A stretch of DNA of 33,077 nucleotides from Bigelowiella natans CCMP2755 (GCA_000320545.1 ADNK01000460.1:1-33077); one strand, 5' to 3'. Shown: positions 1,545 through 30,720, counted from the first letter of the stretch. Numbers and translations: made by a program. Notes: generated by a model not told the origin, from the sequence alone.

Positions 1545-2180
1545 ACCTAGCATCGTCTTAATGCGCAGCTTATCATTATATCCCCACATTTGCTAGACCT
1601 AGACTAATGCCACATATAGCTACCTACTAGATAAGCTATCAGATGCGCATACAACAATGCCCAAATTTGCACGTAGATGCTGCTTTAGCCATATTGCCGT
1701 TCTAGCGTGTTACATAGCTAGTACGCTAATAGATAGTTGCTGATATGGCAGCATGCGCTAGTGCGGCATGCACACGTGCCTTGCCTGTGATGTGACGAGC
1801 TTGTCCGGTGCCATTGTAGCATAGCGCCAGCTAGCTAGCTAGCTCTAGAGCTAGTGCGTCCCGACTGCCCGTCTGCATGTATACCGTACGCATGTGAGCG
1901 TTCCAGAGTTGGCATGTACTAGCTAGCTAGATAGCTCGCGCTCGGCTGCTGATTAACAGTGAAGTGAAGCTGCGCAGCGTCATGGGAAATCCGGTTGTGA
2001 TGGACCACATATGCACGGCTACATATATGCTTGATGCTTGATACGCAACAAGTACGTACCATGAAGTACCAATACTGATACTCTAATTGCATGCATTGTG
2101 GAACTGTATCGAGAGTGAGGTTTTGCTTGGAATAACTGTGTTTTTGCAGGCCAACAGCATGCGGTATTCGCTAATCTAGA
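1545..2180. other. Palindrome-rich (CTAG/AGCT/CATG/TGCA) intergenic block 1, at a convergent junction
   Basis: Dense tagc/gcat/ctag words, e.g. agctagctagctagct 1829-1844; no long ORF; lies between stops at 1475 (+) and 2286 (-). Boundaries approximate. Confidence 0.75.
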
Positions 2181-2285
2181 TACATACTACCAGGCAATAA
2201 AGTGAATATTTCATGCTTGTTGCACACAGTCAGTAGTAGCAGCTCTGGAATGTCATCTCATATCAGCAGAGAAAAAGAGACAATC

Positions 2286-3746
2286 TTAATCCAGCACAAT
2301 ACTTTCCCTTCTCCGAGATTCACGATTGACATTGCACCCTGTGAGTAATGTTTCGCTTTCAAATTTCTCGAGGCCTTCAATGGCCGTATTGGAACATGTT
2401 TGAAAACCACCTTCAACAGCGCTAGCTTCAGTACTCTGGGCGCACCATAACGAAGAACGCACGTCTTGGATGATCCTTTGGAACGATTGTAAATAATATT
2501 AATACAGCCCTTTCATTGAACAACACATGGTGGTGGTTGCAAACTATTCTACCTGTTATTGACTTCTTTTTGCCATTCTGTCTGTGGATTGAGAATCATA
2601 TTTGCTGAGATCTCCAGTTGGCGTAACGCAGAATCCAAGGAGAAATCGCTCATCTGTCCTCCTTTGGCCAGCCACATGGCGACGGCAGCAGTAAATAAAA
2701 CAACATACACCTGAAAGAGAAGATTACTCAACCAGAAAAACCCTAAAGACTGCAGGCTAACCCTGATCTTGTCAATTAGTGGGTACATACTCCGCAGTTG
2801 TAGTCATCCGCTTGGACTGTATCGTGCGTCCGGGTTAATATGAGAGAAGGGTCAAGGCCTGTTGGTAGAAGTGGTAGCAGTAGTAGTAGTAGTAGTACAT
2901 CTGCTTGTCAGGCTGCGAACAATGATAGCGCATAGCACCGCCAAACGACGTCGTCGTCGTCGTCGCCCAGCAACTCACCTCGTAGGGATTCCTGAAGGGG
3001 AACCAAGTCGTCTCTCGGTATGTAGTTCGTTCCAAAGCTGTCGATCAGGAACGCGGAACAACGACGGCCCTAGTGATGATTGGTATGGAGAAACGACGAT
3101 GTTCAACAAAAGGCCATACGTACATGACAAAAAGGTCTTGTGCCTATCTTACCAGTGCGCCTTTGCTGTTGTTTTGGATATGAAGCACAAATAAGACGAA
3201 ATGGTCATCGTGCCATAGATGGAAGAATAAGGTGTGTTCCTGAGGAGGGAAACAAGGGCAGCAGCAAGCTCATACTCGGCTACTATTTTCAACCAACCAA
3301 AACCCTCAGCGAAAACCTTAATTTCACAGAATTTTCTTCGCCAACTCTTCCTTCGGAAAAGATCGCACAGAGACTTGAGAGAGCGTCCATACCTGCGGAC
3401 CATTTACACCATCCCCATTATCATTTACACCATCCCCATCATCATTTCATCGTGGGGAAAGAAGCGCAACTGCTGCAGCACCCACATCATCTTGAAGTAA
3501 TGACTGACAACGATTGACGACTCTTCTTTCCCAGGACTTTTATGCTTGGAATCATCACGTTTGGTGCCTTCCAGCCTCAAAGCCTGGGATGTCAGGAGAA
3601 TTGAAGCGCACGTGACCTGAGAACAGCAGCAGTAGCAGTTCTTGAATCATCATCATCATCACCATCATCATCATCATAAAAGTGAAGGAATAGTGTTAAA
3701 TGTCACTGATCAGCAGCCGTGCATTAACTACTACAACAAAAACTAT

Positions 3747-3782
<36 letters not shown>

Positions 3783-5639
3783 AACCTGATCTGTTTTTAG
3801 CCAAGACGTATCCATGGCAATAGATGCATTCCCCTGAAGCTCCAAGTTTTCATCGGATATCTTGAAAATTCGAACTACTATATCCGCCTGCTGCTGCTGC
3901 TGCTGCTGCTGCTGGACCTTCGACAAATAATTCAGGTTGAGCTGCTGCTTGGATACGACGACGACCTCTCTCCTCCTCCCCCCCTCTCTCTTTCTCTCCC
4001 TGTTTTCACCCACTTCTTATGTTGTTTTATTGTTGTCAGTGTGCGCGCGCTCTGTGTTTACTCACAAGTAATCATGAAGTCATGACCTTTGGAAATGGAT
4101 CCTCCCCTCGTGACGATGATGTCCTCCTTTTAAGCCTTATTGACGAAGAAGAAGACGTTTGTATATCTAGATGGTTCTCATGTACGTCATCTTGTCCTTT
4201 CTTGCTGTTTGTTCGTGAACTCAATTTATTTTCTCTTTCATGATCACGTGGAAATGTCGTTTTCGCCTTCCTCTGCGCTGCCCTCTGCTCTCGCAACATC
4301 GCCATTTTTTTTAGAAAATAATTTGCAGGTGTGGTGGTTGGTGAAGGTGCCACTGTTTTGCTCGCATTTTCTGTTGAACAAGTTCTGTTGATGATGGAGG
4401 AGCTCCTGCTATTATTATTATCGTTATTATTATTATTAGTAGTATCTCTTCCACAAGTAATGCGACGACTTTCCCCATTGCTGCTGCCTCTGAAATTATT
4501 CTGATCCCCATTTGTGCTGCAGTTGCTTCTATCGTCTTTGCCAGAATCCCTACTGCTCTTACTTCTACGTCCACTAAGATTATTGAATACTTCTGTAATG
4601 CCATCGCACTCATTATCGTTGTTGTAAAATACTTCTTCAGAATCTAAATTGCAAGTCGTCGTCACCCCCTTTTCATCTTCATTCGGCGGAGAGTCACTAC
4701 TACTTTCCGTTAAACAAATGGCTTCGTCTTTAGAGGCGCCTCTATTGGTGGCGGATGATGCTCGACCAGGTTTGGGCGGCTGCTGCGAGTACGTTTGAAC
4801 TCCAATGCTGTCATCTATTCGGATGATGGGAACTACATCGGAAGAAGATCTTCGGATTAAATCGTAAAGAATTTTATCCCCAAGCAGAGATCCTTCATCC
4901 TCGGAAAGAATACTCGGCGAATCTATCACTAGAGTGTGACCGAAGAATCTCGAGGAGGAGGAGGAGGAGGAGGAGGGCACGTCCTCAAAAAAGAAAGAGT
5001 TGTTGATATTCTTGGTTCGTGGGAGCTTGCTGTGAATAGCTACATCCTTATGGCCAGCCGCCTTGTCTCTATGGCGCTTCTTGGTCCCCCTTTTTATGAT
5101 CTTCTTCTCTTCCACCCTCCCTTCTTCTCTTCCTCTTCCTCCTTCTCCTCCTCCTCTATCGAGGCCACTACCATAATCCTTCTCATCATCCACCAGATTG
5201 ATGACACATGCAGACCCTCTTTTCTTCTGGTGTGTCTTAGCTGTGGAGCTCCATCGTTCCTGCCCTTCTCCTCTTTCCTCCTCGCACATTTCGTGAGCCT
5301 TCCTCCTCGCAGGCGGGTTCTCATCACATACCTCAGCTCTCACCTCATGCACGACTCCATGTTCCAACAAACTCTCCTCCTCGGGACCTGGAGGGCTTGC
5401 CGAGAGGAGATCAGGAAATGAAAAGAATGACGGCGACTGATGCCCCATTAAAGAAAGAAGAGCTTATGGATCCCACTTGTCCTACTGCTCCTCCTTTCAC
5501 GTCCCTTTTCTCTCTCCTCCTCTTCCTCCTCTTCCTCCTCCTTAATCTTATGAAGGCTCCTCCTCTCCTTTCCGATGCCACTTATTGTGCCGCAATTGTT
5601 GTCATATTTTCCTTGTCGCACTGCATTAACAGAGGCCAT
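2286..5639 (-). CDS. Ulp1/SENP-family cysteine peptidase (C48, SUMO/NEDD8-type protease) with long low-complexity N-terminus; about 9 exons
   Basis: Spliced C-terminal exons give SWLKTDQVTCASILL (WL motif), TLFFHLWHDDHFVLFVLHI (catalytic His), FLIDSF (Asp) and VQADDYNCG|VYVV (Gln and Cys), in C48 order. Stop at 2286-2288. Start at 5639 is inferred, with an intron near 5476-5390; some internal junctions are ambiguous. Confidence 0.85.
3401..3442. repeat. 21-bp tandem duplication in an intron
   Basis: catttacaccatccccattat / catttacaccatccccatcat. Confidence 0.9.
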
Positions 5640-5917
5640 TCTATTCCACCACTTTTCCCGTTCGTAGCTTGGTGAGCAGGAGCATCGTCATCCATCCCCC
5701 TCTCTCTCTCAACGGAAGGAAGGACCAAAGAATGGGTGACCACGAGCTGGCGGTTATCCTTTCAAAAGTCTGACGTATTCGGCAAATCTTTGTCCACTTT
5801 TCGATTTTGGTTGAAAGGGGTGCTATCGAACATACAGTGAGATTACACCATCCCGACTCCAATCCGAAACTTCCGCAATAACCCCGTGAGCGTAGGAATA
5901 CGTGAGTTGTCGACAAA

Positions 5918-6959
5918 ATGTCTAGTAGCGACTTGGTCATTGACCGCAAGGAACCGCAAGTAATGAAAAGACTAATATCGTTAAGTACCGATCGAGCAAA
6001 AAGTTTGCTTCCATTGCATTCATTTATCCTGTTAACATTGTAAACAGGTCAGTGATTGGGGGGCACTTTCTGAAGGCGAAGACGACGAAGAGGCACCATT
6101 ATCGAGGGTTTTGGAGAGGGGATTCAAGGGGCTCGAGCGTGACGTTTCGCAGAATGAACAAGACGAACTTGTCAGTTCTGCCATTTCCCCTTCTCAATGC
6201 TAGAATTGCTAATTATTACGTGCATAAACAACTTACACTAATCAGGAGGCCTGGCTGAATGATTCTGCTGGTGACACGACACCACCACCATCGCCACCAA
6301 AAATAGAATCACGGAAGCTTCCTCGTTCTCCGAAAAAGGTGAACATTGAGCGGGGGTTTGAAACAGTGACGCGCGAGATAGCTTCTGCATCTGGAAGTGG
6401 GGTATTGAAGCAACGAAAGGGGGGTGGGAAGGACTCGACTTCCACCACCCCCGTCGATAACTCTACATCAACGGGATTAAGGATGACCCACAGGAACAAT
6501 AACCAGCGCAGTATCAAATCAGGCCCCTTAGCCACCACAAATTCGCAAGTTGTTTTGAGGAGAACTTGGAACGGAGGGGTTCAGCAGTCGGATCCGAAGA
6601 AGGACGACGACTTCAAAGCGACAGACTCATTATCTGAAAATCGAAGTAGTAGTTGCATCGGTTCATCAGTAGGAGGCATCAAAATTGTCGATGGTGATGA
6701 TGATGATGATGAGAAAACCTCAGAGAGAATGGTGAACAAGGGGAGACACCACGATAGTCCTCAGCACCATCATCATGACCTTGCATCATCAGCGAATGGA
6801 AAGAAAGAAGTGGGTCAGAAAACAAAAAGTGATAAACGCCTAGGATTATTAGCAATGCTGTTGAACACGGCTGGCTTCGCTATCTCGATAATCATGATGG
6901 CTGGTGCGGCGGTAGGAAAACAATTAAAAGCAGCAGCAAATAAACAAGTGTGAACTCAT

Positions 6960-7034
<75 letters not shown>

Positions 7035-7177
7035 AACACATACATGTATTGTTCAAAGGTCAAAGCAGGGGCATGTGGAATCGTAAACTTTTTGAAGCTG
7101 ATGCGAAGTACCAAAAGGGTGCGCTACGTGGTCATGATCACTCTGCTCTCATTTCTGGTAAAGCAACAAAAACCCGC

Positions 7178-7211
<34 letters not shown>

Positions 7212-7908
7212 GGTAGTGGTAATATATCGTGCCACAGCTATCTTCTTATGAATGCTAACTTTTTCCTACAGGTTACCGGTCAAATTCTTTTACGGTCCAT
7301 CGAGACGAGCAGCATTCTCCAGACAAGTAGCGCCTCAAAGAAAGCATTTGGAAACCTACAGGTTGTCTCCAACCCCCACCTCCCTCCTTCTCCTCCTCCT
7401 CCTCCTCTTCCTCCTAGCGAAACCACCGGTAACAAGGGGGGCAATGAGGAGGATAGAGGTAGCGACAATGATGGGACGACCAATGGCGCAGTAGCAGCAG
7501 AAGCAGCCACCTCAGTCGTCAAACTAGTCAATGATGATGATCCAGCAGGGATGTCTGTGGCTAACGCTATCAACACCTTACCTGAGAATAAAAACAGTAC
7601 ATCCAGCACTCATAATATAGAGGACGACGATCATGATAGTAGTAGTAGTAGTAGTAGTAGTAGTTATAGCACTGGTGGAGACAGTAGCAGATATCAAGCA
7701 GAAGATAGTAATGGAGGAGAGTCCACGTCCCTTCCTGCCGGTAACGTTACCCCCACTGCAGCAGTAGTTTCTGTGGAACCAAAAACTAACAATACTTTAG
7801 ATGCTAGTGCGGGAGGAAGCGATGCTGCTGCGCTAGGTGTAATAGATGGAAGTGGCTCTAATAATGCCACCGATACGAATGGTTACACGAATAGCAGCAT
7901 CGGTGGCG

Positions 7909-7942
<34 letters not shown>

Positions 7943-9025
7943 ATTTATGGTTGATGATAGCTCCGTCGATCAAAAAAAAGAAGCTGTTTCTCCCAGTAAT
8001 ACTACAGCAGCAGCAGCAGCAGTAGACCCTATCATGAACCCCTCCTCATCAGCACAACAGCCATCTTCACCAGCCCCTGCTATTCTGCTCCCTTCACATT
8101 CAGAGCCGATATCTTCGTCTTCACCGTCTAAAAAGAGAAGCCTTGCTTCCCCTGCTGCAGCATATACTACACAAATAGAGATAGCTAATCCTGAGGCCGC
8201 CATAAACACCAATAAAACCTTAAAGGCCACTATAGAATCAGAAGCACTATCAACTCTATCGTCACAATCATCACTTTCTCCAATTCCTTCTCCTCCTCCT
8301 GCTCCTGTCCCAGCCTCCCGCTCTAGGCCACTCCAGAGTCATACAACAGAGAGTTCTAATGATAGCAGAAATAGTCATACCAACAATGGAGGTGGTGGTA
8401 GCAGTAGCAGTAGAAGTAGTAAAAATAGTAGTAATAGTAGTAGCAGTAATAGTAGTGGTAGTAGTGGTAGTAGCAGTAGTAGAAGGGATATTAGCAAGAA
8501 TCATGCAAAAAATAATGCAACTGTGAGTACCAGCACAGACAGGAATGAGGACGCAGGAATATCGATTACAGTACCAACCACCGCTGCTTCTTCAGCTACT
8601 AGAGAAGGGAGCGTGGGGAGGCAGCGGGACTATGCTGCTTCCTTAGGCCACACTGAAAAAGATGGAGGAAAACATCATTCAGATGAGCTTCGACCAAGTC
8701 CAAAAAATACAACAGCGAAAGTGATGGCAGCAAATCTAACATTAATGAAAACAGACAAAATTACATCTCCCTCCTCCCTCCCCTCATCTTCCTCCTCTGC
8801 TACAACCTTAAACTCCTCCGCAAATCTTCCTCTTCGCCATCCACAAGACCAAGCCGAGAATGCTGAAACACCAGTTACGTTATCAGCAGGGGCCAATAGA
8901 ACAGAAAAGCGACAGGAAGAAAACCCCAAAGACAACCACAAAAGTGGTAACAATTCTACAATTGTAGGCCGGACACACGGTTCTCCTACCACTACCACAG
9001 CTGTTAAGATGATCAGCAGGAGCAA

Positions 9026-9057
<32 letters not shown>

Positions 9058-9436
9058 GTAAAACCATAAATGGTGCTATTGCTGTTGGTACCAGCAGTGC
9101 TAATAATAGCAGCGGTAATAGCGATGATGAAGGAGGAGGAGAAAGAAGTAACAAAGGTAGTGGGTTTAGTAGTAGCAGTGCAGAGTTAGAGGCAATGAGG
9201 GAGGCTCTGGAGAGGGAGAAAGCTGCTCACGAAAAGGTACGAACACCTCAGTTGGCAAACCTATAACGTCTACACCTTACTTGTTGCGTTTGCGAGCGAC
9301 CAAACGAAAGTTGTTAATTGATATATACGAAAAGTTTGTTTCCATTAAAAATGACAAATCCTGCTTGAACGCTTTGCAAATACGTTATTACGATTAGTCC
9401 AAGAAGGAGCTGAACATGCTGAAACGAAAAAGGTGA
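5918..9436 (+). CDS. Hypothetical membrane-anchored Ser/Thr/Asn-rich low-complexity protein; about 6 exons
   Basis: Phase-0 chain MSSSDLVIDRKEPQ|VSDWGAL...QDEL|EAWLND...ANKQ|VKAGAC...LLSFL|VTGQ...AHEK|SKKELNMLKRKR*. Two hydrophobic stretches (LGLLAMLLNTAGFAISIIMMAGAAV; YVVMITLLSFLVTGQILL). One exon of about 2 kb with poly-Ser from (AGT)n. Confidence 0.7.
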
Positions 9437-9804
9437 TAGAAATTATTGAGTATGATGGTAGCCACTCTGACGTTAACTATGCGTGATATTTTGTCAACAC
9501 ATCTCACACACAAAGACGAACATCGCACATTCACACTCATACAGCACGCATGATGTAACACATCATTTGTTGTAGTGAAGTCTGCTGCTATCTGTTATGG
9601 GAATATCATTCGAAAGGGAAAAGCTGATAAAAATATTTCTCGGGTGAAACGCAAGTGATTTATTTTTTTCCAGCATGTAGGATTGGGGAAGCAAGTTAGA
9701 GCAAGGAAGAATTTACTTCAAAAAAGTTGAAAATAGCACGAGATATATAGCTGGGCGAAAGCAGGGTACTTTCAAAAAATAGCAATCATTTTTCTGAAGG
9801 TTGA

Positions 9805-10560
9805 GACACTCATGTTATTGTGCATGATGATGCGAGCACATATAAAGATGTTGCTGATGACACTCTTCGATGTGACCGTTGCGCGAGCCTACGAAATGCT
9901 ATGCGGACCGTGCATTACGTGGCCATCGTCATCGCTGCACATGTGCGCATGTAGCGTCGATTGCCATCATCATTGTGCACACAGCATCGCTGTCCGCAAA
10001 TCTCTGTCTAGATGTGCCACCTGTCCGCACTACTAGACTAGCGCAGGATGGCGTGCTAGCATGCATTGTCACACATGACGCACGTTGCAAACAGATGCAT
10101 GTGCTTGTGAACACTAGAACATGCTGCCTCCAGTCTAGCAGTCTAGCAGTGAGCATTCTAGCATTGCACAAAACGCAGTTTCGTCGGAGCAAAGTGCCGT
10201 TTTGAAACAATGCGCAAAGCAATCTAGCAATGCTACAATCAGCAAAATCGAAATCGGTGCGCATGACGCACATGCTAGCATGCCAGCATGCACACGCTGG
10301 CGCGTGCTGTTGTCTGGCTTCGATGGGAGCACCAAGAGAAAACACTGAATGACTTTTCCCATTCACTCACGATCGAACACGAGGACAAAGACAATGATGA
10401 AAAACAACGTTTCCAAAGCGTGGCAAGACACTTGCAATGCACAATGATGAGAACAATGAGAACAATGATGAAAAACAACGTTTCCAAAGTGTGGCAAGAC
10501 ACTTGCAATGCACAACCTCATCGTGTCGAACTGATCGCTGTGAGCAACGCTCCGCTTGGC
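9805..10560. other. Palindrome-rich block 2; probable decayed GC-rich, possibly once coding, element
   Basis: Ten CTAG in 10008-10278 and no CCGG seen; no TAA on the + strand in 9846-10593; all stops in the + frames there are TAG or TGA. Confidence 0.7.
10391..10515. repeat. 54-bp direct duplication (10391-10444, 10462-10515), one mismatch
   Basis: acaatgatgaaaaacaacgtttccaaag[c/t]gtggcaagacacttgcaatgcacaa in both copies. Confidence 0.95.
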
Positions 10561-10666
10561 GAAGACGACACAATTCAACCGTTGTCGCAAATTTAAATTC
10601 TTGTGAGAAAGTGTAAGGAATCTCTAAAACCCCGTCACCACCGGGTTGTTAAAGGTTATCTACTAG

Positions 10667-12108: not shown

Positions 12109-12144
<36 letters not shown>

Positions 12145-13194: not shown

Positions 13195-13270
13195 ATTCAT
13201 TACGGATACCTGCTGCTGTCCCTATACAGCCCTTGGACTTTGAACGATATGCAGTGTTCACAATATATTT

Positions 13271-14110
13271 GTGCATGCTGATGGTGATGTTTGCGATGAC
13301 GATATTAAGCTACAAGAAATCCTGCATCGCATATAGCAAGCATACAGCACTGCGTAGCTTTAATGCATGTCATGTGCAGCTTCACATTACGTAGTACATC
13401 TGAGACATCGGCAGACTGTTGAGCAGCACCGTGGATCGATGGGCCGGACAGCGCTAGCTAATTAATAAAAAAATTGGCGCCCACGTACGACTTATACCAC
13501 GCAATAAGGCCGCCCTGCGATCGACCGAAAGCCGCGCGTAGCAGGAAGTACGAATCATGTTAGGACTGTGCACAGAACAGCAAGTTAGCAATATAAGGGG
13601 GGGGGAACCTGCATGCGTGCTACTGTTGTTGTGCGTGCGTGCTGAGCTCGCTTGGGCGCCTGACATCCACAAATGTGCATGCTAGCATTGTTATGCATGA
13701 GCTTGATGTTGTAAATACTCCGTATATATACGTGAGACATGCTAGCATGTAGCGTGTCTCTTACTGATGCGATGATGAATGTAGTCGCCTACATACGCTT
13801 GCTAGGCTAGTCTAGTAGTAGGGCTGGCCGCCGCGACCGCTGTAATATAGTACAGCAAATAGAATCTAGTCATTATGCATGGCCAAGCCGAACACATCGA
13901 TGCATCGCATCCGACACAACGGGCACACGTACAGGAACGCTAATAAACGCTGCGCGCTTGCACGCACGCACGCACACACACACACACACACACACGTACA
14001 TCTAGACATATCTAGATATGCACACTAGCTAGCACACGAGAGACATAAAAATATTGTCACTTATTTACTTATGATGATAGAATAGATAACATGTACGTAT
14101 GTGGATGCTG
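13271..14110. other. Palindrome-rich block 3, at a convergent junction
   Basis: acatgctagcatgt 13737-13750 and catatctagatatg 14007-14020; lies between stops at 13194 (+) and 14253 (-). Confidence 0.75.
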
Positions 14111-14252
14111 ATGTACGATCACCACTTATATGATTGCATTTACTACGTCATTTTAATATCATCCAGAATGAAAAGGTGGTAGGTCGGGCTTGTGGGTTCA
14201 TCTATCGTATCTGTGCATTACATCATTGGCCATGCACATGCTTATTTCCCAA

Positions 14253-15919
14253 CTACATCTTATTCTCCCCAGCTAGAACTTCTTCATCCCTCGCGAGGAG
14301 ATCGTGCACGAGACTAGTTGTCCCAGAACTCGCAATAGTGCTACTGCCACGCTGGAGTCTGCTCCTGCGTCTTCTATCTCTTATTACACTCTTGCCATTT
14401 ATACCACTTCTTCTGCTACTACTATTACTACCATTGTTATGCCCAGTACTGCTGTCCGAAACATAATTGGAGCTAATCCCTAAGCGTTCAAGAGCTCGGT
14501 CGATTTCCTCTGCATATTTGCTGCCAGAGCGCGACTTACTAATGTTTTCTTGTTTTTGGGCCATCTTCTCCTGTTTCTGGAGTCGGCGGAGGGCACGATC
14601 TCGCGCACTGCTGCCTCCTTCACGGATGCGGGAGCCTCTCCTTACAGCCCGCTTGACCACTGAACCACCCTGCTGTAATGAGGGAGGGGACGGGGTAGAC
14701 CTTCCTTTCTTCCCCTCATCTGTTCTTAATGGCGTGAAGCCCTCACCCTCCTCCTTCTCCTCCTCCTCCTTTGAGTCTACGGGATGATGATTGTCATAAT
14801 TATGCTTCTGATGACCGTAATTTCGGGGCAGGGCCCCGGACATATTGCCATCCTCTTCGCGTCCTTTGGGAGAGAATTGTTTCGAGGGAGCAAGGTGGTT
14901 TTCGCCACTGCTGACTGAACGACCATTGGTGCTGTTGCTACTCTCCTCTGACTCAACAATTTTCTTGAGCAAATCTATCGCTGCCTGGAAGTTGGCCAAC
15001 TGGTAGCTCAGACCCCCAGCGTCTATAGACGATAACACCTTGCTATCAGGACTAAAATTCTTTAAGTACTCGAGGTTAGAGCACCAGTGCTGATCCCCCG
15101 CTAATGCAATTACGTAGGCAACCAAAGGTAGCACGTCGTCAGCTGCAAGCACTTCGCCAAAGGATTTAGAAGTTTGAGAGGAAGATGATACTGAAGCTGT
15201 TATGATTTCCTGCACATCGTAAAGGCAGCATAGCTTGGCCAGGGGAGTGGTGATGCTCTTACAGTTAAGCTCCTTAAGTCTCTCAACGGCACGGGAAGGG
15301 TTGAAGTGAAGATCTATCCTCACACCTATTCGTTCTCTGAGCGTTTTCCTTGCCTCTTCCACAGCTTGCATAGTTTCTAAGCTTCGGAACAGTTGACTAT
15401 CCTCCTCCTTGTACAGCGTGCAAATACCCTGGAATATCTTCCTATGGAGCGCGTTTTGCACGAGTGACTCGGCCGCAACTAATATCTCCAGGAATCGATG
15501 CTCATTTGCGGGATTCCTGCTTCCTGTCCAAACCGCCTCAAGGGCCTTCTGACAGCGCGTCTTACATTTTTGAGCGGCATCGTCTACGAAGCCTTTTACA
15601 ATCACATAGTTTTGGCGGAAGTGATTGACAAATTCCTGTAGGCTCCCCATCATCACATTTATCGCCTTTGAGTCCAAATGCGAAGAAATACATTTCTTGT
15701 GCTCTCCGAGTCGTCGTCGTGCCAACGCCATCTTACGTTTAGGCCGAGCACTGACTCGAGCCTGTTGTTCCAAGGAATTCTTTGTTCTTATGCGCCCTAC
15801 TAGCGGTGCTGATGTAAGAATTAGTCGAAAGCTCTCAAAGTTCTCGTTGTAGCTGGTTTCCTCACCAAGAACCTGGATATAAATATTGGTGTGCGTTCGT
15901 GTATATGCCGTGGGTTGGG

Positions 15920-15965
<46 letters not shown>

Positions 15966-16446: not shown

Positions 16447-16563
16447 CCTGTCAGCTGATGCAATGGTTGTTTGAACCCTGCTTTGGTGAGTGAGGTCGAA
16501 CCTGAACCGAAGCATCAATTAACAGTCATTGCTCCAATACAAGTAATACCGCAAGAGTTGCTT

Positions 16564-17883: not shown

Positions 17884-18014
17884 TCTAGAGTGCTTTGGAA
17901 AATATGTAGCTGTTGTGTGAGAGCCATTCGATATTCACAGATAATTTCCGTTGATTGTCAACGATGACATTTTAAATTACATTAACATGGCCCTCTAATA
18001 TCTGTACAGAAAGA

Positions 18015-18762: not shown

Positions 18763-18919
18763 AAGATTACCGAGAAAGTTTGTGATTCGCGGTTTTTAAG
18801 AGACCACCACAAAGCTTTATTTGAAAATCTGAGAGATGAATCAATCTCACAAGCTTGCATGTAATATGTTCAAAATTATAACACGAAAACATTGTACTCT
18901 TGATGAACACACGCCTTTC

Positions 18920-18964
18920 AGGATGACAATTGAAAATTTAAGTATATTCATTACACCCGTCTTA
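18920..18964 (+). repeat. Dispersed short element, copy A (core only)
   Basis: aggatgacaattgaaaatttaagtatattcattacacccgtctta matches 30095-30140. Confidence 0.75.
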
Positions 18965-18984
18965 TCATAGACACAACATATATA

Positions 18985-19024
<40 letters not shown>

Positions 19025-19556
19025 TGTATTTTTTTTTTTTTAGTATGCGAAAGTACACACAACGTCTATAACGCGTAGTATGTACAGCGTGTCAATGTAG
19101 CTTTACAAAGCTTCGGCTAGAGCGCTTAAATTGTATTCACTTGTCTCCGCTATTGTCTAGTTATGTCCATCATCAATGTCAAGTTGTTACATGCTGCGTG
19201 CTCGCGAAGCATCGTTATCGATCGATCGCACGCTAGTGCTCTGTGTGACTACGTGCGACAGTATGTAGCGCTAGACTCACATGCGATGCGTGTATGTGCA
19301 GCTGCACACGAACGCTACGTACGCACGTGCTGTAGCTAGCGTTGTAACATAGTAAACGTGATGACTGTACTACTAGACTACAGGGCATGTACGTCGCATA
19401 TGAGCCATGCTAGCATGCGCTCTAGCACTAGCTAGCTAGTATACACGACTGCTGCGCGAAATCTAGAAATGTGCGCCATTCAAGACCGAATCGAAACAAC
19501 TAACTTGCATTTCTAGATTTGATTGCATGTAACACATCACAGCAGATCGGAGACTA

Positions 19557-19721
19557 AACAGATTCAACATGTATTAGCACTGTGTAGCCGCTATAGCAGC
19601 GCTGCATTATTACACAGCTACGTACATGAGGATGGCCATTGAACAAATTCAATTTAATTCATCATCATCACATCTGATCATACACTAAGAATCAATTTAA
19701 TTTGATATTACACCCGTCTTA
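19557..19721 (+). repeat. Dispersed short element, copy B (internally expanded)
   Basis: aacag..caacat...tgtagccgct...cacagcta...aggatggccattgaa...attacacccgtctta, colinear with 30047-30140. Confidence 0.7.
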
Positions 19722-20177
19722 TTACACTTGTCTTGCTAGCTAGTGCTGCTAGATAACAGTAGCGTACACATGTGTGCGCACGTGCTAGCGTGCTATTGTG
19801 CGTGCATGCATGCAAGCATGCAACGACGAATAGACGCATCAGCTACATGTAGATGTCATGCACATTAAAGCTGCAGTCGTGGCTAGATCACAGCTGACTG
19901 TGGCGATGCTGTGCATTGTTGTAATGTTGTACACCCACAAGTGTTATGTGCCTTGCGCGCAGAGCCAGCCTGTGCAAGCTCGGCTGAATGAGCTTCCAGC
20001 TTTGAAATAACATGAGTGAGTCAAATTAAGCACGCATAGCTGTTCACAATGCAATGAATGCAGGCCACATATAGCATGCTATTGTATGGACCATTTTATA
20101 CGTTTTATACGGTTTTTCGTGGATACTTAATGATGATTCTACTGCGATCAACACATTTTGTTATGCAGAAAACAGAT

Positions 20178-22126
20178 TCATATATGTGAAGATGCTTGGC
20201 GGATTTTTAACGCTTTCTCATCGGTTTCAAGTATCCGAAGACCGGCTTGCATTTCATAGATCTGAGGGAAGGAATATAGTATAATGTAAATAAGAATTTG
20301 AATTTCCCACAACATTAGTTCCAACAACAGCTGCCGTAAGAGTGTTTAATTTTTAATAGTGGTACCTCCTGTTCTATCTTATTTAGGTTTGCCCGCCGGC
20401 CCCGAGTCGTAGAACTGAAGGCAGCTGAGGAATGGAGAAATTATTCAATTTTAATTATGATAACATCTGTAATGCTGAGGTATTTAGGGAACCATATGAT
20501 GATGGTTCTATTGTCGACATATTCGAATTCAAACTGCAAAGCAGGCGCATTGAAATCTAGGGCGAAGGTGATAATTATTTAACTTTGCTTTTATTTTTTT
20601 CTCGATTTTCATAGTTCCCTTGTTTCTGTGTTGCATTACCTGCCCACTGGTCTGAAGCAAGATAATCCTTTAACACCATAGCCTGCGTATTTTATGACAG
20701 TTGCTTTGTAAACGATTGTTGAAATCGGTGAGTTCTCTCTCGTTCTGGTGTTGTGCTCATGTCATTGTTCTTCTATGTTTTAACTTTTGTCGTTGCTATT
20801 ATTGATTTATAATCTTCGTTTTAAGCTAAAAAGAAAAACAGGGTTATGGGCACTGGTATCCTCGGAAATGACTGAAGCAAAATTGTAATTTCGAAGAATT
20901 TTGTTTTTCATCTACAGTCGCATGGCTTGTCATCAATGGTTGGCATCATCACCTTCTTACCTTTCTCTCCATGTCTGCAATCTTATACTCTAATCGTATC
21001 CTCTCCACGTGTATATCTAGCAGATTTTCATCCATTTGTATATGAGGTATTGGGCACACACGCACACACACACACACACACACACAACACACATGTATAC
21101 ACACATTGAAAATGAGAGAGGAAGATAAAGAGACGGATGGGTAGAGTGAGATGAAACATTGTCTTGTCGTCGGTTCTAATACAGCAATATTGTCGAAGAA
21201 TGTACCTACGGTACTACCATCAATCAAAGCCTGTATTTCTTGCATATCATGATCGTTCACCATTGTCGCCCCCCTTGCAACCCCTCTAGTTATCCCCCTC
21301 CCTCCTCGTCCTCTTTTATTGTCACTATTTTCAACAATGTCCTCATCCGAGGAAACAATGTACTTTCTGTAACAAGTATGCGAAAATAAGTAAGTGTCAT
21401 TCTGCAGTTCCACTCTCAAGTGTCAAACCTGATTCTATCAAGAATAGCTGCTAGAGTTATCTGCCAGGAGCCTTCGTCTCCATTCTCGCCGTACAGTAAC
21501 GCAGGATCAAGCAAAAGGTTATTATACCAGTTATTATTGTTGCCGTTGTTCGACCCGAAGAATCCTCCCCCTCCCAAAAACAAGGAATTGCCATCATCCG
21601 TAAGGAGTCCGCCTTCGTATGGGGACCGGTAAGGTTGGCCTGGAAGGAGAGTTTTCGCGTGATTTGAAGCTCTACCCCCTCCACATGCAGTGACGATAAA
21701 TCCACCAATCACTGCAAATAGACTCACACTGGCAGAGGAAGATAGCGAGACAATTTGTGATGTACAAAACAGTAGAGATAGGTAGGTAGTACTGTATACA
21801 TTTAGAGTGTGTGCGCGTGTGTTTGTGTATATGCATGTATCACCGGCTTTCAACTTTGCCTCTTCTATGAACGTAGAACTGATTGTCAGCATCCCTTCGC
21901 CTTTCTCTTTCCCAATACCTTTCGAATCATCATTGCTCAAGAAATACCCATACTCTTTTTGTATTGAGTTGCACCATTCGCGGTCGTAGATGTCATAAAC
22001 CCTGACTATCCTCCCATTGGCTCCACCGCCTCTGCCTAATATCATGCCTCTCTCGTATTGTCGCCTTATCGAGCTGCTCTCCCAGATTCCTACTCCATGG
22101 CGAGCAGAAATGCCATTACAGGGCAT
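20178..22126 (-). CDS. Hypothetical protein with one hydrophobic segment and C-terminal coiled coil; multi-exon, internal model partly unresolved
   Basis: ORFs 21416-22126 and 20949-21419 join at phase-consistent sites (LDRIR|KYIVSSDED; STV|DIHVERIRLEYKIADMERK); terminal exons RANLNKIEQE|IYEMQAGLRILETDEKALKIRQASSHI*. Confidence 0.62.
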
Positions 22127-22389
22127 AGGGGGGCTACCTTTCTTGGTTCGAAATCCTGGAGATTCCTCGAGATCGAGTTATATCTCGAGATATCTCGGAG
22201 ATCTATCAGAAAATTTTCGACTGATCAATCCTCCTCCTCCAGCCTTCGTCGGAACCCGTTCTTGATTGCTTTCAGGGCCTCGGAGGGGTTTCGTTCTGGG
22301 ATACATGTACTACTTCCATGCACTACTTTCCCATTATTAGCTAGTTGAATCTAGGTAGTAAGTGGCTACTTTGTAATGAATATCAGAAT

Positions 22390-22752
22390 ATGGATGTCCG
22401 CTCACCACCTTCCCCCTCGCGTCCTCCTCCTTCGCCCTCCACCGTTCGGCAAGTCTCTGTTTCGACGGCATTTACAAACCAGGAACATGTATTATGTGTC
22501 TTGCTATATTTTGCACAGCGCTGAAGAGATTTTGAAGCCGTATAAGTAACTACTGCATGAGTGATTCGTGACGTATATGACACCGACCGCTGTGTTGGTT
22601 GGCAACCTTCATGATATACCTGTTCTTTAGGTGCTATTGGCAACAGTAGGCCTGCCTGCTCGTGGTGTGTATTCAAATCACTACTGTCATACTGTGTTGC
22701 CGCTGCTATGTTGGTGTCAGTGGTGAAGATGGGTTGAGAGAAGGGGAGAGCG

Positions 22753-22791
<39 letters not shown>

Positions 22792-25700: not shown

Positions 25701-25872
25701 CATTGATGATAATAGTTTTCCCCATTACTATTAATGTCTCAGTATTTCTTCTTGTCGTAGTATTTCGATGACACTACTACTGTGAAATATGCAAGGAAGC
25801 AACACAAGCATTATTTTCTGTCGTAGGAAATGCTGCTTATATTTCCATGTGCTTCAGGGCTTGATTATAACA

Positions 25873-25918
<46 letters not shown>

Positions 25919-26695
25919 CTGAAGTGTATTTTTGTGCGTACCCGCTTGCATATGTGTGAGCCAGGAATCTCCATCAGACGAGAAGTCGTTCCGAGAAAGT
26001 AAGTAGCAGAGTTATCACACACATATTGTTTTAAATTACTGTGATGGACGATGTGTACATCCTAGTAGAAAACTGCTAAAGTAGTTGTTCGTTCATATTC
26101 TTGGATGGTACTTACTACCCCTTTCAATCTAGTGGAAGATATGCTGCTGCTGCTGCCTCTGCACACAGAGCATACATTACTACCTTCTTCGTTTGGCTGA
26201 TGTGTGTATCGACGATGCTCTCTGTTATCCTCCTCCACTGCTGCTGCTACTACTACTACTACTATCTGACGATGCTCTCTGTTATCCTCCTCTACTACTA
26301 CTACTACTACTACTACTACTATCTGACGATGCTCTCTGTTCTCCTCCTCTACTACTACTACTACTACTTCTTCTTCTTCTTCTTCTACTTCTACTACACA
26401 GTCACTAGAAGCACAGGGACGACTCCTACCATAGAAGAAGAACAACAAACTGCACTTCCGCCACTTTCAATAGAGGAAATATGCAGAACCAGAAGACTTT
26501 CCGAAACTGTGGTAGTTGTTCTACCATATTTAGTGCATTATTGGTTGTTGTTTGTCATTTACATTTTCATGACATATACATACCGCCGATTTTGAATTTT
26601 TAAGTAAAAGCCTGAAGAGGTGAGATTATTATTGTCCAAACAGCTGATTCCTCCTCTATTTAGTACTGCCACCAGTTATATGTTTGATTCGCCAC

Positions 26696-26738
<43 letters not shown>

Positions 26739-28028
26739 ATTTAGCGTTCGTCATCCCGCGAGGCAAACGTTCTTCCCAGAAGCAGAAGAGGCTCCTCATC
26801 AACGGCTAGCATGAGAGTTTTGCTTAGGGTGGGTTTCAAGCGTAGATAGATTTTGGACATAATAGAAGCAAAATGGGGAAGGGGAGGAGGAGGAGGAGGA
26901 GGAGGAAAGGATGTTACTTTTGCAGCATTCTAAGAGCAGCAGCAGGGTTATTCGGAAGACTTTCGAAAGTTTCCATGCAAGAAAGTGTTCGTGCTGTCTC
27001 TGTGCTTCATATCTCCTCCTCCTCTAGTATATATTGTAATATATTTCTGTCGTTGCCATAATGTAGTAGTAGTAGGAGTAGGAGTAGTAGGAGGAGTAGT
27101 AGGAGTAGGAGTAGTAGCGGTAATGGTGATGGTATTATCAAGGGCCACACCGGCAATTGATCGTCGTGAGTTTTGATGTTCTGATATGCTTTCTGTTGAT
27201 GTAGCAAAATCTACGAGTACCTACTATAACACACAGCACGAGCTACTCCAAGGTAGTAATGATAACAGTATTAACAGTATTAACAATAATAAAGAATAAA
27301 CTTATCGTTTCTTCCCAAATGAAGAAGAAGAAGAAATGTATGGATGATTATGGTGATGAAAACGACTGCCTTCACTAGAGAGAAAGGAACGAAATTTGGG
27401 AAAATTCACGGATAATATCGTATGAATCTCCCCCCCCCCCCCCCCCCCCCTCTCTCTCTCTCTCTTTCTCTTCCTTTCTTTTTTATATGTTTGTGTGCAT
27501 CTGTCTGTGTAGAGAGAGGGAGAGAGAGAGAGAGATTTATATGACAGTGTACAAACTTATGTAATATAGGTCACGAAAGATGGACGTGAGTTTATCAAGC
27601 GGCTCAAGGCATATACAAAAACACAGGGTTGCTTGCACAACAACAACAATTGTATAACAATCATGTCTGCATATATGTGGAAATTCTGGTTGCATATACT
27701 GTGTATTACGCACAGCAGCAGCTGACATTATTATCTATTATCTACTCTGAATCTGGCATTAATAATGTAGACTGGGCAAAGAAAGACTCTGCTGCCGTCT
27801 TTACCTCAACTTTGCCGCGTGCGATCGAAACAGCTACGGTAGTAAGGGACGAGCGATGGTGCTGTCTTCCAGATGCTGATGCTGATGTGTCGTAGTTGTA
27901 GCAGTAGTAGCGTGGTGATGATAATCAGGAGGGATGGTTGTTGTATGCTGACCATAATCAAGGCCTTCTTAGATCCAAACGATTCGGAAACTCAGACACA
28001 GCAATGGTAGTGGTAGTAGTAGTACTGC

Positions 28029-28059
<31 letters not shown>

Positions 28060-28380
28060 CGGATGACGAATTCACACAGAATAATACACAAATTGTCTTA
28101 GCTGCAAGTAAATAGTAGATCGATAATGATTTCTTGATGACAGAAAGAGTTTTACACTATAGAAGGTGGTGTGGTTGACACCGCGTTATGACGTCTATAT
28201 ATGCTGTGTTTGTAGATTTAGAAGTAATAATAGTAATAGTAGTAGTAGCAGTAGCAGTATGCATATTATTAGACTCTACGATTTCCAACAGAATACATCG
28301 CTCTTTTTGAGTGCACTGGTGTACCTTCAACTTAACCGACAGGTCTGCTTTGAACGTCCTGGACACAGGAATATGTCATG

Positions 28381-28412
<32 letters not shown>

Positions 28413-28516
28413 CGTGGTGCTCGTAGTCGTAGTAACGACTAAATTTAATGATGCTGCTACTTTAGGGATGCAAGTTGAAGGCATCAAGGTGGTGGTGGTG
28501 GTGGTGGTAGTGTGTC

Positions 28517-28552
<36 letters not shown>

Positions 28553-28602
28553 ACAGCAGTGGTTGTAGTGTGTGCCAGTAATTTATCAACATATATGCTT
28601 AT

Positions 28603-28666
<64 letters not shown>

Positions 28667-28677
28667 GTTTGTGTGTC

Positions 28678-28716
<39 letters not shown>

Positions 28717-28739
28717 ATATAAATAGATTGGGAGAGAGG

Positions 28740-28776
<37 letters not shown>

Positions 28777-28792
28777 AAGTTATCTGATATGA

Positions 28793-28825
<33 letters not shown>

Positions 28826-29149
28826 GAATCTCATCATTATAGATGTTCATCATCATCACTCATCATTTAGAAAGAGCTCCCTGAAGAGTATGAAAAGTGG
28901 CAAAGGGACAAATTTCGTTACAGGTAGTAATGTGGTGACGTTGTTAGCATGCCAACTACGTGCGCATTATTTTAAAGATTCCTCCTCCTCCTCCTCCTCC
29001 TTCTCTACCTCCTCTTCTCCTTCTTTCCTTTGCAGATTTCCAGGGGGTGAGTCCTACATGGATCTGTGTCATCGTTTATCCACGTTGGTGCTCGAGCTAG
29101 AAAGAACGAAAAGACCTGTCGTTGTGGTAGTAGTAAGAGCAGGAGTAGC

Positions 29150-29181
<32 letters not shown>

Positions 29182-29717
29182 GAGGAGGAGGAGGAGGAGG
29201 AGCAGTAGTAGTAGGTATAAGAGTGATGCTGATAGTAGCAGCAGTTGTGGTAGTATTATTATTCGTCATAGAAGCAGTAACAACTCGTAGTAGGAAGAAG
29301 GCATAACATGCATTGATGTGTAAATTTTATCAACAAACTGTGACTTGCGAGGTTATTTTGCTTTTTAGGTTTCTCACTTATCAACCTTACAAGCTTTATA
29401 CTCGTATTTTCGGGCAATTCCTGTCAGAAAAATCCCCAGTGTCAAGATTAAAAGGCGAGTTGCATTTTAATTTTACTTCGAAAGATATGTTTCATATAAT
29501 GTTGATTGAGATTAATTCGACTGGCTGATTGTTCGTTGTTTTGCCAACGGCAACAAAAGGGAGGAGAAACCATCATCTTAGAAAGCAGAATCTTACTGTA
29601 TATTTGGTGCTTGTTTCTGATCAACTGACAATGTTAATTTTTGGCTTTTACAGTCATACAATGGTGATTCTGAGTCCTCATCAATACGGTTGGAAGGAGA
29701 AGAGGATAGAGATCTAG
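22390..29717 (+). CDS. PFKFB: 6-phosphofructo-2-kinase/fructose-2,6-bisphosphatase (PFKFB family), more than 20 exons
   Basis: Kinase domain: VGLPARG|KS, YINWLG, VFNAG|KYRR, VAVFDATNTTPRRR, FMESIC, SPDF. Phosphatase domain: VFTSTLPRAIETA, W|SALNVLDTGICHG, RYR|FPGGESYMDLCHRL, LELER, VSH, HTMVILSPHQYGW. Symbol is family-level; exons in 25040-27400 are unresolved. Confidence 0.95.
23210..23255. repeat. 46-bp perfectly alternating purine-pyrimidine tract with (GC)10 core, intronic
   Basis: tacgcatgtat(gt)5(gc)10gtgtg read directly. Confidence 0.9.
26211..26380. repeat. 57-bp-period tandem repeat x3 containing (CTA)n, intronic
   Basis: gacgatgctctctgtt at 26211, 26268 and 26325. Confidence 0.9.
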
Positions 29718-29959
29718 CAGAAATATTTAGTTATCTGCTAGTCTGCTGGCAGGAATAGAAATAGGGGCAAGAAGGTTATCGAAGTTGCGCAAATTCGTTA
29801 TTCCCAACTCTATGCGTTCGAGTAGACCTTGTTAAAGTTTGTAAACTATGTAACTGATAATGTTGCAGCTGGCTGTATAGAATTTGAGGTTAAGGAATAA
29901 GGAAGCAGTAATCGAAATTTTGATCGAACGTAGGGTTTCGTGCGGTTATGGTACGTTGT

Positions 29960-30610
29960 GGTACACACGCACGTAAAAACATGGCTTAGCGCATATAGAT
30001 GTGCACACCTGTATGACTAGCTGATGTTGTGTCTGTGGCAGAAACCAACAGACACAACATCAGCGCTGTAGCCGCTGCATTGCACAGCTATATCAGGATG
30101 ACCATTGAAAAATTTTAATTTGTTCATTACATCCGTCTCACCTGTATGACTAGACTATGCATGCTAGCTAGCATGCATGACTACATGCTGTGTGCAATGC
30201 ACATCTAGATCTAGAAGTAGACGACGAGTTTTATTTTTTATCGATCAAATCTAGAAATGACGAGCTACATGTGTACTACATGCTAGCATGCTTGCTAGCT
30301 TGTGATGTTTAACGTACAATTGAAAAAATTGAACATATCATTCATGGCTATATCTATATATATACATATATCTATATATATATATATATTTATATATACA
30401 TCTCATACTAGCATATTGTTGCTACGAACGAGGCGGCCGTAGCGCAACCTGTCGATCAGCTGTGTGCCTATTGTACCAGCAATCATAGAATAATGGTCAT
30501 GCAAACGCGCCCAGTTTGCTGTGAGTGTTTCTGCTGCAGTGTGCAACAAAATCGTGTCGTTCTATACGCATGATGGCTGTCATGCGGTGCTGCGATGAGA
30601 TGTGCTTCGA
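29960..30610. other. Palindrome-rich block 5, at a convergent junction
   Basis: 22-bp perfect palindrome 30157-30178; lies between stops at 29717 (+) and 30721 (-). Confidence 0.78.
30006..30153 (+). mobile_element. Candidate 118-bp insertion (30021-30138; element copy C) flanked by a 15-bp direct repeat
   Basis: cacctgtatgactag at 30006-30020 and 30139-30153; internal 17-bp hairpin stem; 3' part homologous to 18920-18964 and 19557-19721. Confidence 0.55.
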
Positions 30611-30720
30611 TTCGCTCATTGCATGTTTTATTTTTAGTGCAAGCTCAAATATTTGTGATTTCTTCTTGCATGTCCAGATTATATTCTCTACTGTATAAAA
30701 CAATCGTGTTAGGCATCGAT

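Follow-up and report, generated by a model that had tools for sequence, protein, structure and literature searches.

Palindrome-rich spacers at the tail-to-tail gene junctions of a Bigelowiella natans nuclear locus

In kinetoplastids, a modified base termed base J occupies convergent strand-switch regions, which lie between long polycistronic units. Beyond yeast, animals and kinetoplastids, the means by which RNA polymerase II (Pol II) is stopped between closely packed convergent genes are poorly understood. The present analysis concerns a stretch of 33,077 nucleotides (ADNK01000460.1, positions 1-33077; hereafter 'the window') from the chlorarachniophyte Bigelowiella natans CCMP2755, which alignment of transcripts at 99.9-100% identifies as nuclear DNA of that species, and in particular five palindrome-dense blocks within it. 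Past the one poly(A) site that was mapped in the window, this eukaryotic DNA has a make-up of its own, and the same make-up recurs in every tail-to-tail gap.

An earlier note on this DNA had offered base J as an analogy for the blocks. The two are alike in representing a distinct DNA state where converging transcription ends, but base J is a chemical mark defined biochemically whereas the B. natans blocks are defined by sequence, and the analogy fails on gene organisation: the nine-exon gene beside the first block possesses its own transcript start (position 5573) and poly(A) site (position 2101), and the genes of the window switch orientation every 3-9 kilobases (kb), with no long same-strand arrays.

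The palindromes of bacterial REP/BIME elements prefer sites after the 3' ends of genes and between convergent genes. They are described as short and extragenic (PMC3733652, PMC3333891). The blocks likewise consist of palindromes in non-genic DNA, downstream of 3' ends or in convergent gaps; REP/BIME elements, however, are conserved imperfect palindromes of 20-40 nucleotides (nt) served by a dedicated transposase, whereas the blocks lie in a eukaryotic nucleus and contain mostly spacerless palindromes of 4-16 nt, among which only the 12-nt palindrome CATGCTAGCATG recurs. Under the hairpin rule of Mimivirus, the poly(A) tail is immediately preceded by a hairpin within the transcript. Here too intergenic palindromes are tied to the 3' ends of mRNAs and are usable from both strands, but the first palindrome, TGCATGCA, lies past the mapped cleavage site, and shuffled sequence folds as well as the blocks do.

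Two mutational processes are also pertinent. Repeat-induced point mutation likewise acts by transitions in a specific context and creates islands of skewed dinucleotide content outside genes, but it targets duplicated DNA, changes CpA to TpA and yields AT-rich sequence, while the process known from B. natans runs in the reverse direction and the blocks are unduplicated. That process was established in mutation-accumulation lines, in which integrated giant-virus and virophage DNA mutated ~1000-fold faster than the rest, almost exclusively by changes of TpA to TpG or CpA (Mettrop et al., bioRxiv 10.64898/2026.01.13.699255). The same preprint defined hypermutated windows by a Rho TpA of at most 0.43 and a Rho CpA+TpG of at least 1.52, reporting 124 clusters of 1-kb windows, and placed the intergenic point-mutation rate at roughly 3-fold the genic rate and 17 of 21 indels in intergenic DNA, although the intergenic fraction is half the size of the genic one (bioRxiv 10.64898/2026.01.13.699255). 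The hypermutation itself is therefore already published; CTAG, palindromes, gene orientation and poly(A) sites go unmentioned in that preprint. The blocks resemble its hypermutated regions in coming from the same organism, in showing raised CpA/TpG throughout (1.33-1.75) and in having GC well above CG; the published regions are integrated viral DNA, however, and TpA is at normal or high levels in four of the five blocks, which therefore fall outside the published class.

In the literature searched, which did not cover the 2012 B. natans genome paper, no description of CTAG- or palindrome-rich 3' spacers in chlorarachniophytes was found. New relative to that literature are a palindromic spacer tied to gene orientation, the coincidence of this spacer with a poly(A) site, its symmetry between strands, its class-wide excess of palindromes, the 12-mer CATGCTAGCATG, and the CTAG-rich convergent gaps of the related genus Amorphochlora.

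Five blocks and their position relative to genes

The claim, made in the earlier note, that this DNA contains palindrome-saturated blocks is borne out by counting. The six palindromes CTAG, AGCT, CATG, TGCA, GTAC and ACGT occur 278 times in the 4,129 nt of the blocks and 515 times in the remaining 28,948 nt, corresponding to 67 versus 18 per kb. When these words are counted per 200 nt, the background is about 4, and values of 12-24 are reached at five sites only (at about 1600-2200, 9800-10400, 13200-14400, 19000-20200 and 29800-30800). The imbalance is greatest for CTAG, with 65 of the window's 114 copies inside the blocks and 49 outside (a 9.3-fold ratio of densities), followed by GCTA/TAGC (5.1-fold), CATG (4.4-fold) and ATGC/GCAT (3.9-fold). 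Within the blocks CTAG reaches 15-30 copies per kb across 0.5-1.1 kb, or about 4-fold the expectation from base composition and 1.7-fold that from trinucleotides, and no further CTAG cluster was found in the window outside them.

Block edges were placed by leave-one-out change points, using a model trained on the other blocks. Block 1 has change points at 1547 and 2058 and, with its 16 CTAG, forms the convergent spacer 1547-2100, which has the stop of a plus-strand gene on its left and, on its right, a minus-strand gene's poly(A) site. Block 2 (9811-10313), a TpA-erased island in which CTAG is retained, occupies a tandem junction. Blocks 3 (13244-14150), 4 (18940-20087, with change points at 19041 and 20087 and a (TA)21 tract at 18978-19019) and 5 (29939-30625) are again convergent spacers, distinguished by word counts and shuffles as well as by change points. 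The left edge of block 1 lies within 66-103 nt of the stop codon of the plus-strand gene (which ends at 1475); block 3 begins 66 nt past the stop of a plus-strand open reading frame (ORF; 13178) and ends 103 nt before the stop of a VPS9-domain gene (14253); and the left edge of block 4 is ~180-280 nt from its stop codon.

The excess of palindromes was controlled by dinucleotide-preserving shuffles of each block. About half of it survives within the shuffles, and blocks 1, 3, 4 and 5 still stand above them (z 3-6), while block 2 displays no excess over its shuffles (z 1). Coding, intron and head-to-head controls gave z values of at most 0.5, and the introns of the mapped gene contain 18 of the six palindromes per kb; the earlier note, too, had set the blocks apart from the introns.

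That note had further stated that convergent junctions carry such blocks and divergent junctions do not, a statement that, with several of the orientations taken from short ORFs, holds here for all four convergent gaps and for all four divergent ones, none of which has a block (one-sided Fisher p = 1/70). In particular, orientation is given by transcripts or homology for the right flanks of block 1 (the nine-exon gene), block 3 (the VPS9 gene) and block 5 (an FHA-domain gene), all on the minus strand, and is strongly suggested for the left flank of block 2 by a plus-strand ORF of 684 codons; for the left flanks of blocks 1, 3, 4 and 5 and the right flanks of blocks 2 and 4 it comes from ORFs of 70-250 codons only. 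The head-to-head gap at 5574-5917, whose left edge is set by the 5' transcript end at 5573, has no block and contains 2-4 of the six palindromes per 200 nt. Orientation calls from codon-usage log-odds and from purine skew were tried and discarded, both being too weak because the coding regions are full of (AGT)n-type repeats. Long in-frame tracts of (AGT)n/(ACT)n, (GGA)n and (GAT)n are present on both strands in the ORFs at 2839-3800, 7155-9180 and 26219-29260, and such tracts swamp word-based protein searches as well as codon-usage scores.

The relationship of the blocks to mRNA 3' ends was established at the nine-exon gene (2101-5573, minus strand), which belongs to the 90% cluster of the JGI model Bigna1/86028 and is covered by three transcripts (L004, L005 and L006) at 99.9-100%. 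Six non-templated A residues (AAAAAA) follow window base 2101 in L005, marking the poly(A) cleavage site, and L004 places the stop codon at about 2286, so that the 3' untranslated region (UTR) extends over 185 nt (2101-2285, minus strand). The six palindromes reach 93.5 per kb in the interval 1545-2100, past the cleavage site, as against 32 per kb in the 3' UTR (6 occurrences) and the 18 per kb of the introns; in 60-nt bins, 8 fall in 2040-2099 and 2 in 2100-2159. The right change point of block 1 is 43 nt off the poly(A) site, and the first palindrome past the cleavage site, TGCATGCA (8 nt, 2088-2095), begins and ends 6-13 nt beyond it. Because block 1 borders this site, the blocks are post-cleavage DNA and not 3' UTRs: they are spacer beyond poly(A) sites, the site at 2101 being the single mapped one that underlies the statement. 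A comparison of poly(A) sites with block edges, which the earlier note had proposed, is accordingly positive at the right edge of block 1, for the one site mapped. A collection of metagenome contigs returned no match to the core of block 1, and none to the last coding exon of the gene on its left; it evidently lacks these transcripts, and the empty result is uninformative on transcription of the core. For the exon at 6228-6950, an exhaustive search yielded a fragment of 147 residues only.

Composition of the blocks and possible mutational origins

The explanation that we favour most, though as no more than an even call, is that the blocks represent unselected spacer beyond poly(A) sites, shaped chiefly by local mutational processes. 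In gene-dense regions, post-cleavage DNA would be the sole DNA of this locus outside mRNA, intron and promoter; tail-to-tail gaps would consist wholly of such spacer, and head-to-head gaps would contain none of it, only promoters, so that the orientation rule would arise from what the gaps contain and without a special mechanism. The make-up of the spacer would be fed by short palindrome-making insertions and duplications, by slippage within repeats that are self-complementary, (AGCT)n, (CATG)n, (GATC)n and (TA)n among them, by small inserted elements, and by transition-biased decay, including the documented hypermutation of TpA to TpG or CpA, of which block 2, with CTAG outlasting TpA in other contexts, would be the end state. 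We infer both that mutation, not selection, maintains the block state and which process makes the palindromes.

Several features of composition bear on this explanation. Symmetrised dinucleotide odds within the blocks are high for GC (1.83), CA/TG (1.50) and AT (1.28) and low for CC/GG (0.43), AA/TT (0.73) and GA/TC (0.74), and purine-pyrimidine alternating steps account for 0.61-0.65 of steps in every block versus 0.48 elsewhere. Strict alternation extends over 17 runs of 12-43 nt, modestly more than in shuffles (z 2-5); in these runs the blocks resemble Z-DNA-prone tracts, a likeness known from sequence alone. Measured against trinucleotide expectation, the 16 palindromic tetramers have a summed observed/expected ratio (O/E) of 1.26 in the blocks, with 14 of the 16 above 1 (Mann-Whitney p = 4e-5 against non-palindromic tetramers), and are under-represented outside them (O/E 0.85); against the same expectation, no class excess of 6-nt palindromes is found in the blocks. 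Because the excess of tetramers is class-wide, a general palindrome-making process fits better than a single binding motif.

When half-blocks are oriented by their upstream gene, the counts of 1- to 4-mers equal those of their reverse complements within multiple-testing noise (for example, A 1152 versus T 1119), while coding sense strands are strongly skewed (AA 618 versus TT 312); this symmetry rules out a sense-strand RNA signal as the cause of the blocks. Nor are the blocks copies of one element: an all-against-all alignment, another comparison proposed in the earlier note, recovered no recognisable common homology, with blastn at word size 7 returning only simple-repeat matches and one ~45-nt element shared by blocks 4 and 5. 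An identity as microsatellites or tandem arrays is ruled out by a tandem-repeat cover (TRF) of 11.8% of block bases versus 11.4% elsewhere; 17 of 60 gaps between successive CTAG measure 4-6 nt. A search against Rfam (E <= 1) matched nothing but microsatellites, artefacts that stayed under the gathering scores; a scan for tRNAs was empty, and the ORFs within the blocks contain no Pfam domain, transposases included. Folding energies display no excess over dinucleotide shuffles (z 0.03, +0.41 and -2.3) and so give no sign of selection for hairpins; selected hairpins or cruciforms were rejected as an explanation on this ground.

Repeats of other kinds are present in the window. Polypurine/polypyrimidine repeats are common in its promoters and introns and 4-fold depleted in the blocks. 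Poly-C runs of ~20 nt lead straight into (CT)n at 199-270, where (TA)n follows, and at 27423-27475, both in non-block intergenic or intronic DNA. At 28580-28730, in a plus-strand region after PFKFB-like exons, a composite (CA)n(TA)n(TG)n microsatellite forms a 75-nt inverted repeat without a spacer, and has a block-like dinucleotide score yet no CTAG cluster.

The part played by the published hypermutation differs among the blocks. Block 2, with a Rho TpA of 0.39 and a Rho CpA+TpG of 1.75, passes both published thresholds, whereas blocks 1, 3, 4 and 5 have Rho TpA values of 1.13-1.39, above the 0.43 limit; Rho CpA+TpG is 1.54 in block 5, 1.33-1.49 in blocks 1, 3 and 4, and 1.11 in the rest of the window. 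If TpA within CTAG and (TA)n tracts is set aside, the remaining TpA has a rho of 0.18 in block 2 versus 0.72-1.02 in the convergent blocks. Of the 19 TpA surviving in block 2, 10 lie within CTAG (6% expected, p = 3e-8) and 4 more in CTAC/GTAG. A hand tally of the base after the edited A, among 211 scaffold-10 mutations of Table S2 of the preprint, gave A 67, T 67, C 52 and G 20; since G makes up 20.5% of TpA contexts outside the blocks, TpA followed by G is struck about two to three times less often. CTAG would thus outlast other TpA because it is the sole tetramer with this poor context, G after A, on both strands, and the enrichment of TpA contexts in the blocks over the rest (G > T ~ C > A) is the inverse of the hit rate in the mutation table. 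An outright immunity of CTAG was considered and ruled out by the 20 mutations recorded in TAG/CTA context. Steps of GC (rho 1.7-1.9) far exceed those of CG (about 1.0; range of CpG 0.87-1.11) in the blocks, the pattern that conversion of adjacent TA units to TG and CA would leave. Block 2 has been shaped mainly by the hypermutation; in the other blocks it contributes at most, and may account for the excess of GC over CG and the raised CA/TG.

Block 2 also contains a 54-nt direct duplication (10391-10444 and 10462-10515; 98% identical, period 71), the single difference being C/T at a CpG/TpG position. Two overlapping ORFs, of 145 codons at 9932-10366 (minus strand) and 109 codons at 9876-10202 (plus strand), have no Pfam match and are probably not genes, because erasure of TpA removes TAA and TAG. 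Among the de novo insertions of Table S2, 9 of 15 yield sequence ending in ACA (for example +GACA, +CAACA, +ACA, +ACACA and +CATTACA), and one multi-nucleotide change runs from TGGC to AACA; the authors do not comment on this pattern, which has the look of a distinct process that makes small insertions. In the blocks, enrichment of ACA/TGT is only 1.6-fold.

The earlier note had also suggested that the blocks could be mobile DNA that gathers downstream of genes and is then hypermutated. The hypermutation of TpA is documented in this species and block 2 falls within its thresholds, and block 5 contains an insert of 118 nt (30021-30138) between perfect 15-bp direct repeats (30006-30020 and 30139-30153), read directly from the sequence and comprising a hairpin with a 15-bp stem and a ~45-nt segment that recurs twice in block 4 (18918-18962 and about 19620-19735). 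The suggestion does not extend to the blocks as a whole, which have no common homology and of which the four convergent ones are not depleted in TpA; a foreign origin from viruses or transposons finds this one insert only, with no Pfam domain in the block ORFs and no homology between blocks.

It appears unlikely that the blocks are decayed copies of one mobile family, or footprints left by the excision of a cut-and-paste element with TA targets, accumulated in the only harmless landing zone. Such an origin would explain the 118-nt insert, its perfect 15-bp duplication and its partial recurrence in block 4. A footprint composed of TA, CT|AG and TA would read TACTAGTA, from which conversion of TpA would give TGCTAGCA, the commonest 8-mer around CTAG (6 copies), and the unconverted 12-mer TATACTAGTATA is present in one Amorphochlora gap. 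Orthologues of DDE transposases number 34 in Amorphochlora and 8 in B. natans, according to the Amorphochlora genome paper. The lone TATACTAGTATA match is, however, within chance expectation there; arrays of CTAGCTAG at 4-nt spacing cannot come from TA-target footprints; no block ORF encodes a transposase or any other Pfam domain; and homology between blocks amounts to simple repeats and a single ~45-nt element. An origin of the spacer in local mutation fits the strand symmetry, the class-wide excess of palindromes and the non-homology of the blocks, and it fits as well the 15-bp target duplication of the 118-nt insert and the intergenic excess of mutations and indels in the preprint.

A recurrent 12-nt palindrome, a related genus and possible functions

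A scan of the blocks yielded 60 maximal perfect palindromes of 8-22 nt, pure A/T ones excluded. The 12-nt palindrome CATGCTAGCATG stands out among them, with four exact and four one-mismatch copies where 0.15 would be expected (for perfect copies, about 0.06, a rough hand estimate from block tetramer frequencies), all inside blocks 2-5. The perfect copies, located by motif match, lie at 10271-10282 in block 2 (with one-mismatch copies at 10052-10063 and 10279-10290), 13738-13749 in block 3 (one-mismatch copy at 13678-13689), 19406-19417 in block 4 (one-mismatch copy at 19809-19820) and 30279-30290 in block 5; block 1 contains no copy, and the flanks of the copies are unrelated to one another. 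The palindrome scan also identified a 22-nt perfect palindrome at 30157-30178, an expanded form of CATGCTAGCATG centred on CTAGCTAG. One mismatched copy has CCAG in place of CTAG, the change expected from TpA hypermutation. The word before CTAG is CATG 12 times and TGTG never, and on this count random conversion of (TA)n was ruled out as the source of CATGCTAGCATG.

A comparison with a relative, as the earlier note had proposed, was possible at one locus of Amorphochlora amoebiformis, a 23-kb contig with the orthologue of the VPS9 gene, in which the gene calls of the original authors run plus, minus, plus, minus. Its two convergent gaps contain 31 CTAG in 1,450 nt, while the remaining 21,593 nt have 34 between them (odds ratio 13.9, p = 2e-20). 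The O/E for CTAG is 5.1 and 9.2 in these gaps; the divergent gap reaches 1.3, and gene bodies have values of 0.5-1.2. The gaps are TA-rich (rho 1.5), with little or no enrichment of CA/TG (0.75-1.08) or GC (0.89-1.31). CTAG-rich tail-to-tail spacers are thus common to both genera, as seen at the one Amorphochlora locus, and the CA/TG and GC component is largely specific to B. natans; the comparison suggests that richness in CTAG is the older feature. The genome paper for Amorphochlora makes no mention of CTAG-rich convergent gaps.

Several of these observations weigh against an origin of the blocks in unselected mutation. The convergent blocks are not depleted in TpA (rho 0.72-1.02 outside CTAG), and the documented hypermutation is therefore not their main cause; slow decay can keep CTAG but cannot create a ~4-fold excess of it. 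The eight copies of CATGCTAGCATG in unrelated surroundings, against 0.15 expected, and the 12 to 0 preference for CATG over TGTG before CTAG are likewise awkward, as random conversion of TA does not predict such recurrence. The enrichment of CTAG in Amorphochlora, so diverged that the VPS9 proteins are ~55% identical, might be due to selection. The block signature is missing from introns, where constraint is weak as well; and one poly(A) site only was mapped.

The main rival is a functional interpretation, which we consider possible but distinctly doubtful, namely that the blocks are orientation-independent termination or boundary elements, built as arrays of palindromes with a CTAG core and with CATGCTAGCATG as the full site. 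Bound by a dimeric protein, or adopting an unusual DNA conformation, such arrays would stop Pol II soon after cleavage and protect the convergent neighbour, and since a palindrome is alike on both strands, one array could serve both genes. The abrupt start of block 1 directly downstream of the cleavage site of a minus-strand gene, the recurrence of CATGCTAGCATG in unrelated flanks, and the CTAG richness of the Amorphochlora gaps fit this interpretation better than a purely mutational one. More specifically, blocks occupy all four convergent gaps and one tandem gap but no head-to-head gap; CATGCTAGCATG appears in 4 of 5 blocks, with eight copies for an expected 0.15; both convergent gaps at the Amorphochlora VPS9 locus are CTAG-rich (O/E 5-9) beside gene bodies at 0.5-1.2; and 17 alternating purine-pyrimidine runs of 12-43 nt are present. 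On the other hand, a binding-site model would need far fewer CTAG than the 15-30 per kb that extend over 0.5-1.1 kb, palindromes of all kinds are enriched rather than a single motif, block 1 is without CATGCTAGCATG, and folding energy shows no excess. Furthermore, an Amorphochlora transcript contains four CTAG inside its 3' UTR, so that CTAG in that genus is not limited to post-cleavage DNA. The mutational and functional interpretations are not mutually exclusive.

The earlier note had raised base modification as well, and it seems very unlikely, on analogy with the marking of kinetoplastid convergent strand-switch regions by base J, that the blocks are domains in which 4-nt palindromes such as CTAG and CATG would mark gene ends through a modified base, for example N6-methyladenine, 5-methylcytosine or a hypermodified T. 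DNA methyltransferases use symmetric 4-nt sites of the same type as the enriched words, a circumstantial point, and the survival of CTAG in block 2 (10 of 19 TpA) is above what the 2- to 3-fold lower rate in the mutation table provides, an excess that protection by a modification or by a bound protein could explain. The blocks show no depletion of CpG (rho 0.87-1.11), however, which argues against heavy deaminating CpG methylation, and no such mark has been reported for B. natans in the literature searched. These elements can be combined into a single, rather improbable proposal: that chlorarachniophyte nuclei possess a sequence-defined, orientation-independent 3' boundary, consisting of CTAG-core arrays placed right after poly(A) sites, with CATGCTAGCATG as the full site in B. 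natans, at which a dimeric factor or a base mark would stop Pol II, insulate convergent neighbours and shield CTAG from hypermutation.

If the blocks are mutational in origin, they would constitute a clean natural record of palindrome-making repair and insertion processes, and would also document the sequence context obeyed by an A-to-G hypermutation system only recently discovered, among whose targets CTAG decays most slowly. A functional role would make them bidirectional terminators or insulators of a new type, with a simple motif open to test; genetic tools have reportedly been developed for protists, Amorphochlora among them. In either case, block edges could predict poly(A) sites from sequence alone for the annotation of these genomes.

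Flanking genes and minor observations

Within the nine-exon gene, a 458-codon ORF at 4072-5448 is 100% identical to an MMETSP protein clustered (at 90%) with Bigna1/86028. The transcript L005 is unspliced across the seventh intron (2711-2788; window positions 2552-2860 correspond to 2004-2312 of L005), and its intron-retaining product has 653 residues instead of 764; the short product is recorded from two samples.

The VPS9-domain gene (14256-15731, minus strand; Pfam VPS9, E = 1.4e-14) apparently consists of a single exon and directs its 3' end toward block 3. Its homologues in chlorarachniophytes are 41-55% identical, the best of them covering 100% of the query. In a collection of 5.8 billion proteins no identical B. 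natans protein was found for this ORF, the best match being 44% identical, although other genes in the window have exact matches. The FHA-domain gene (31160-31701, minus strand) reads toward block 5 from two exons, with positions 2-27 and 31-58 of the Pfam profile split over two successive minus-strand ORFs.

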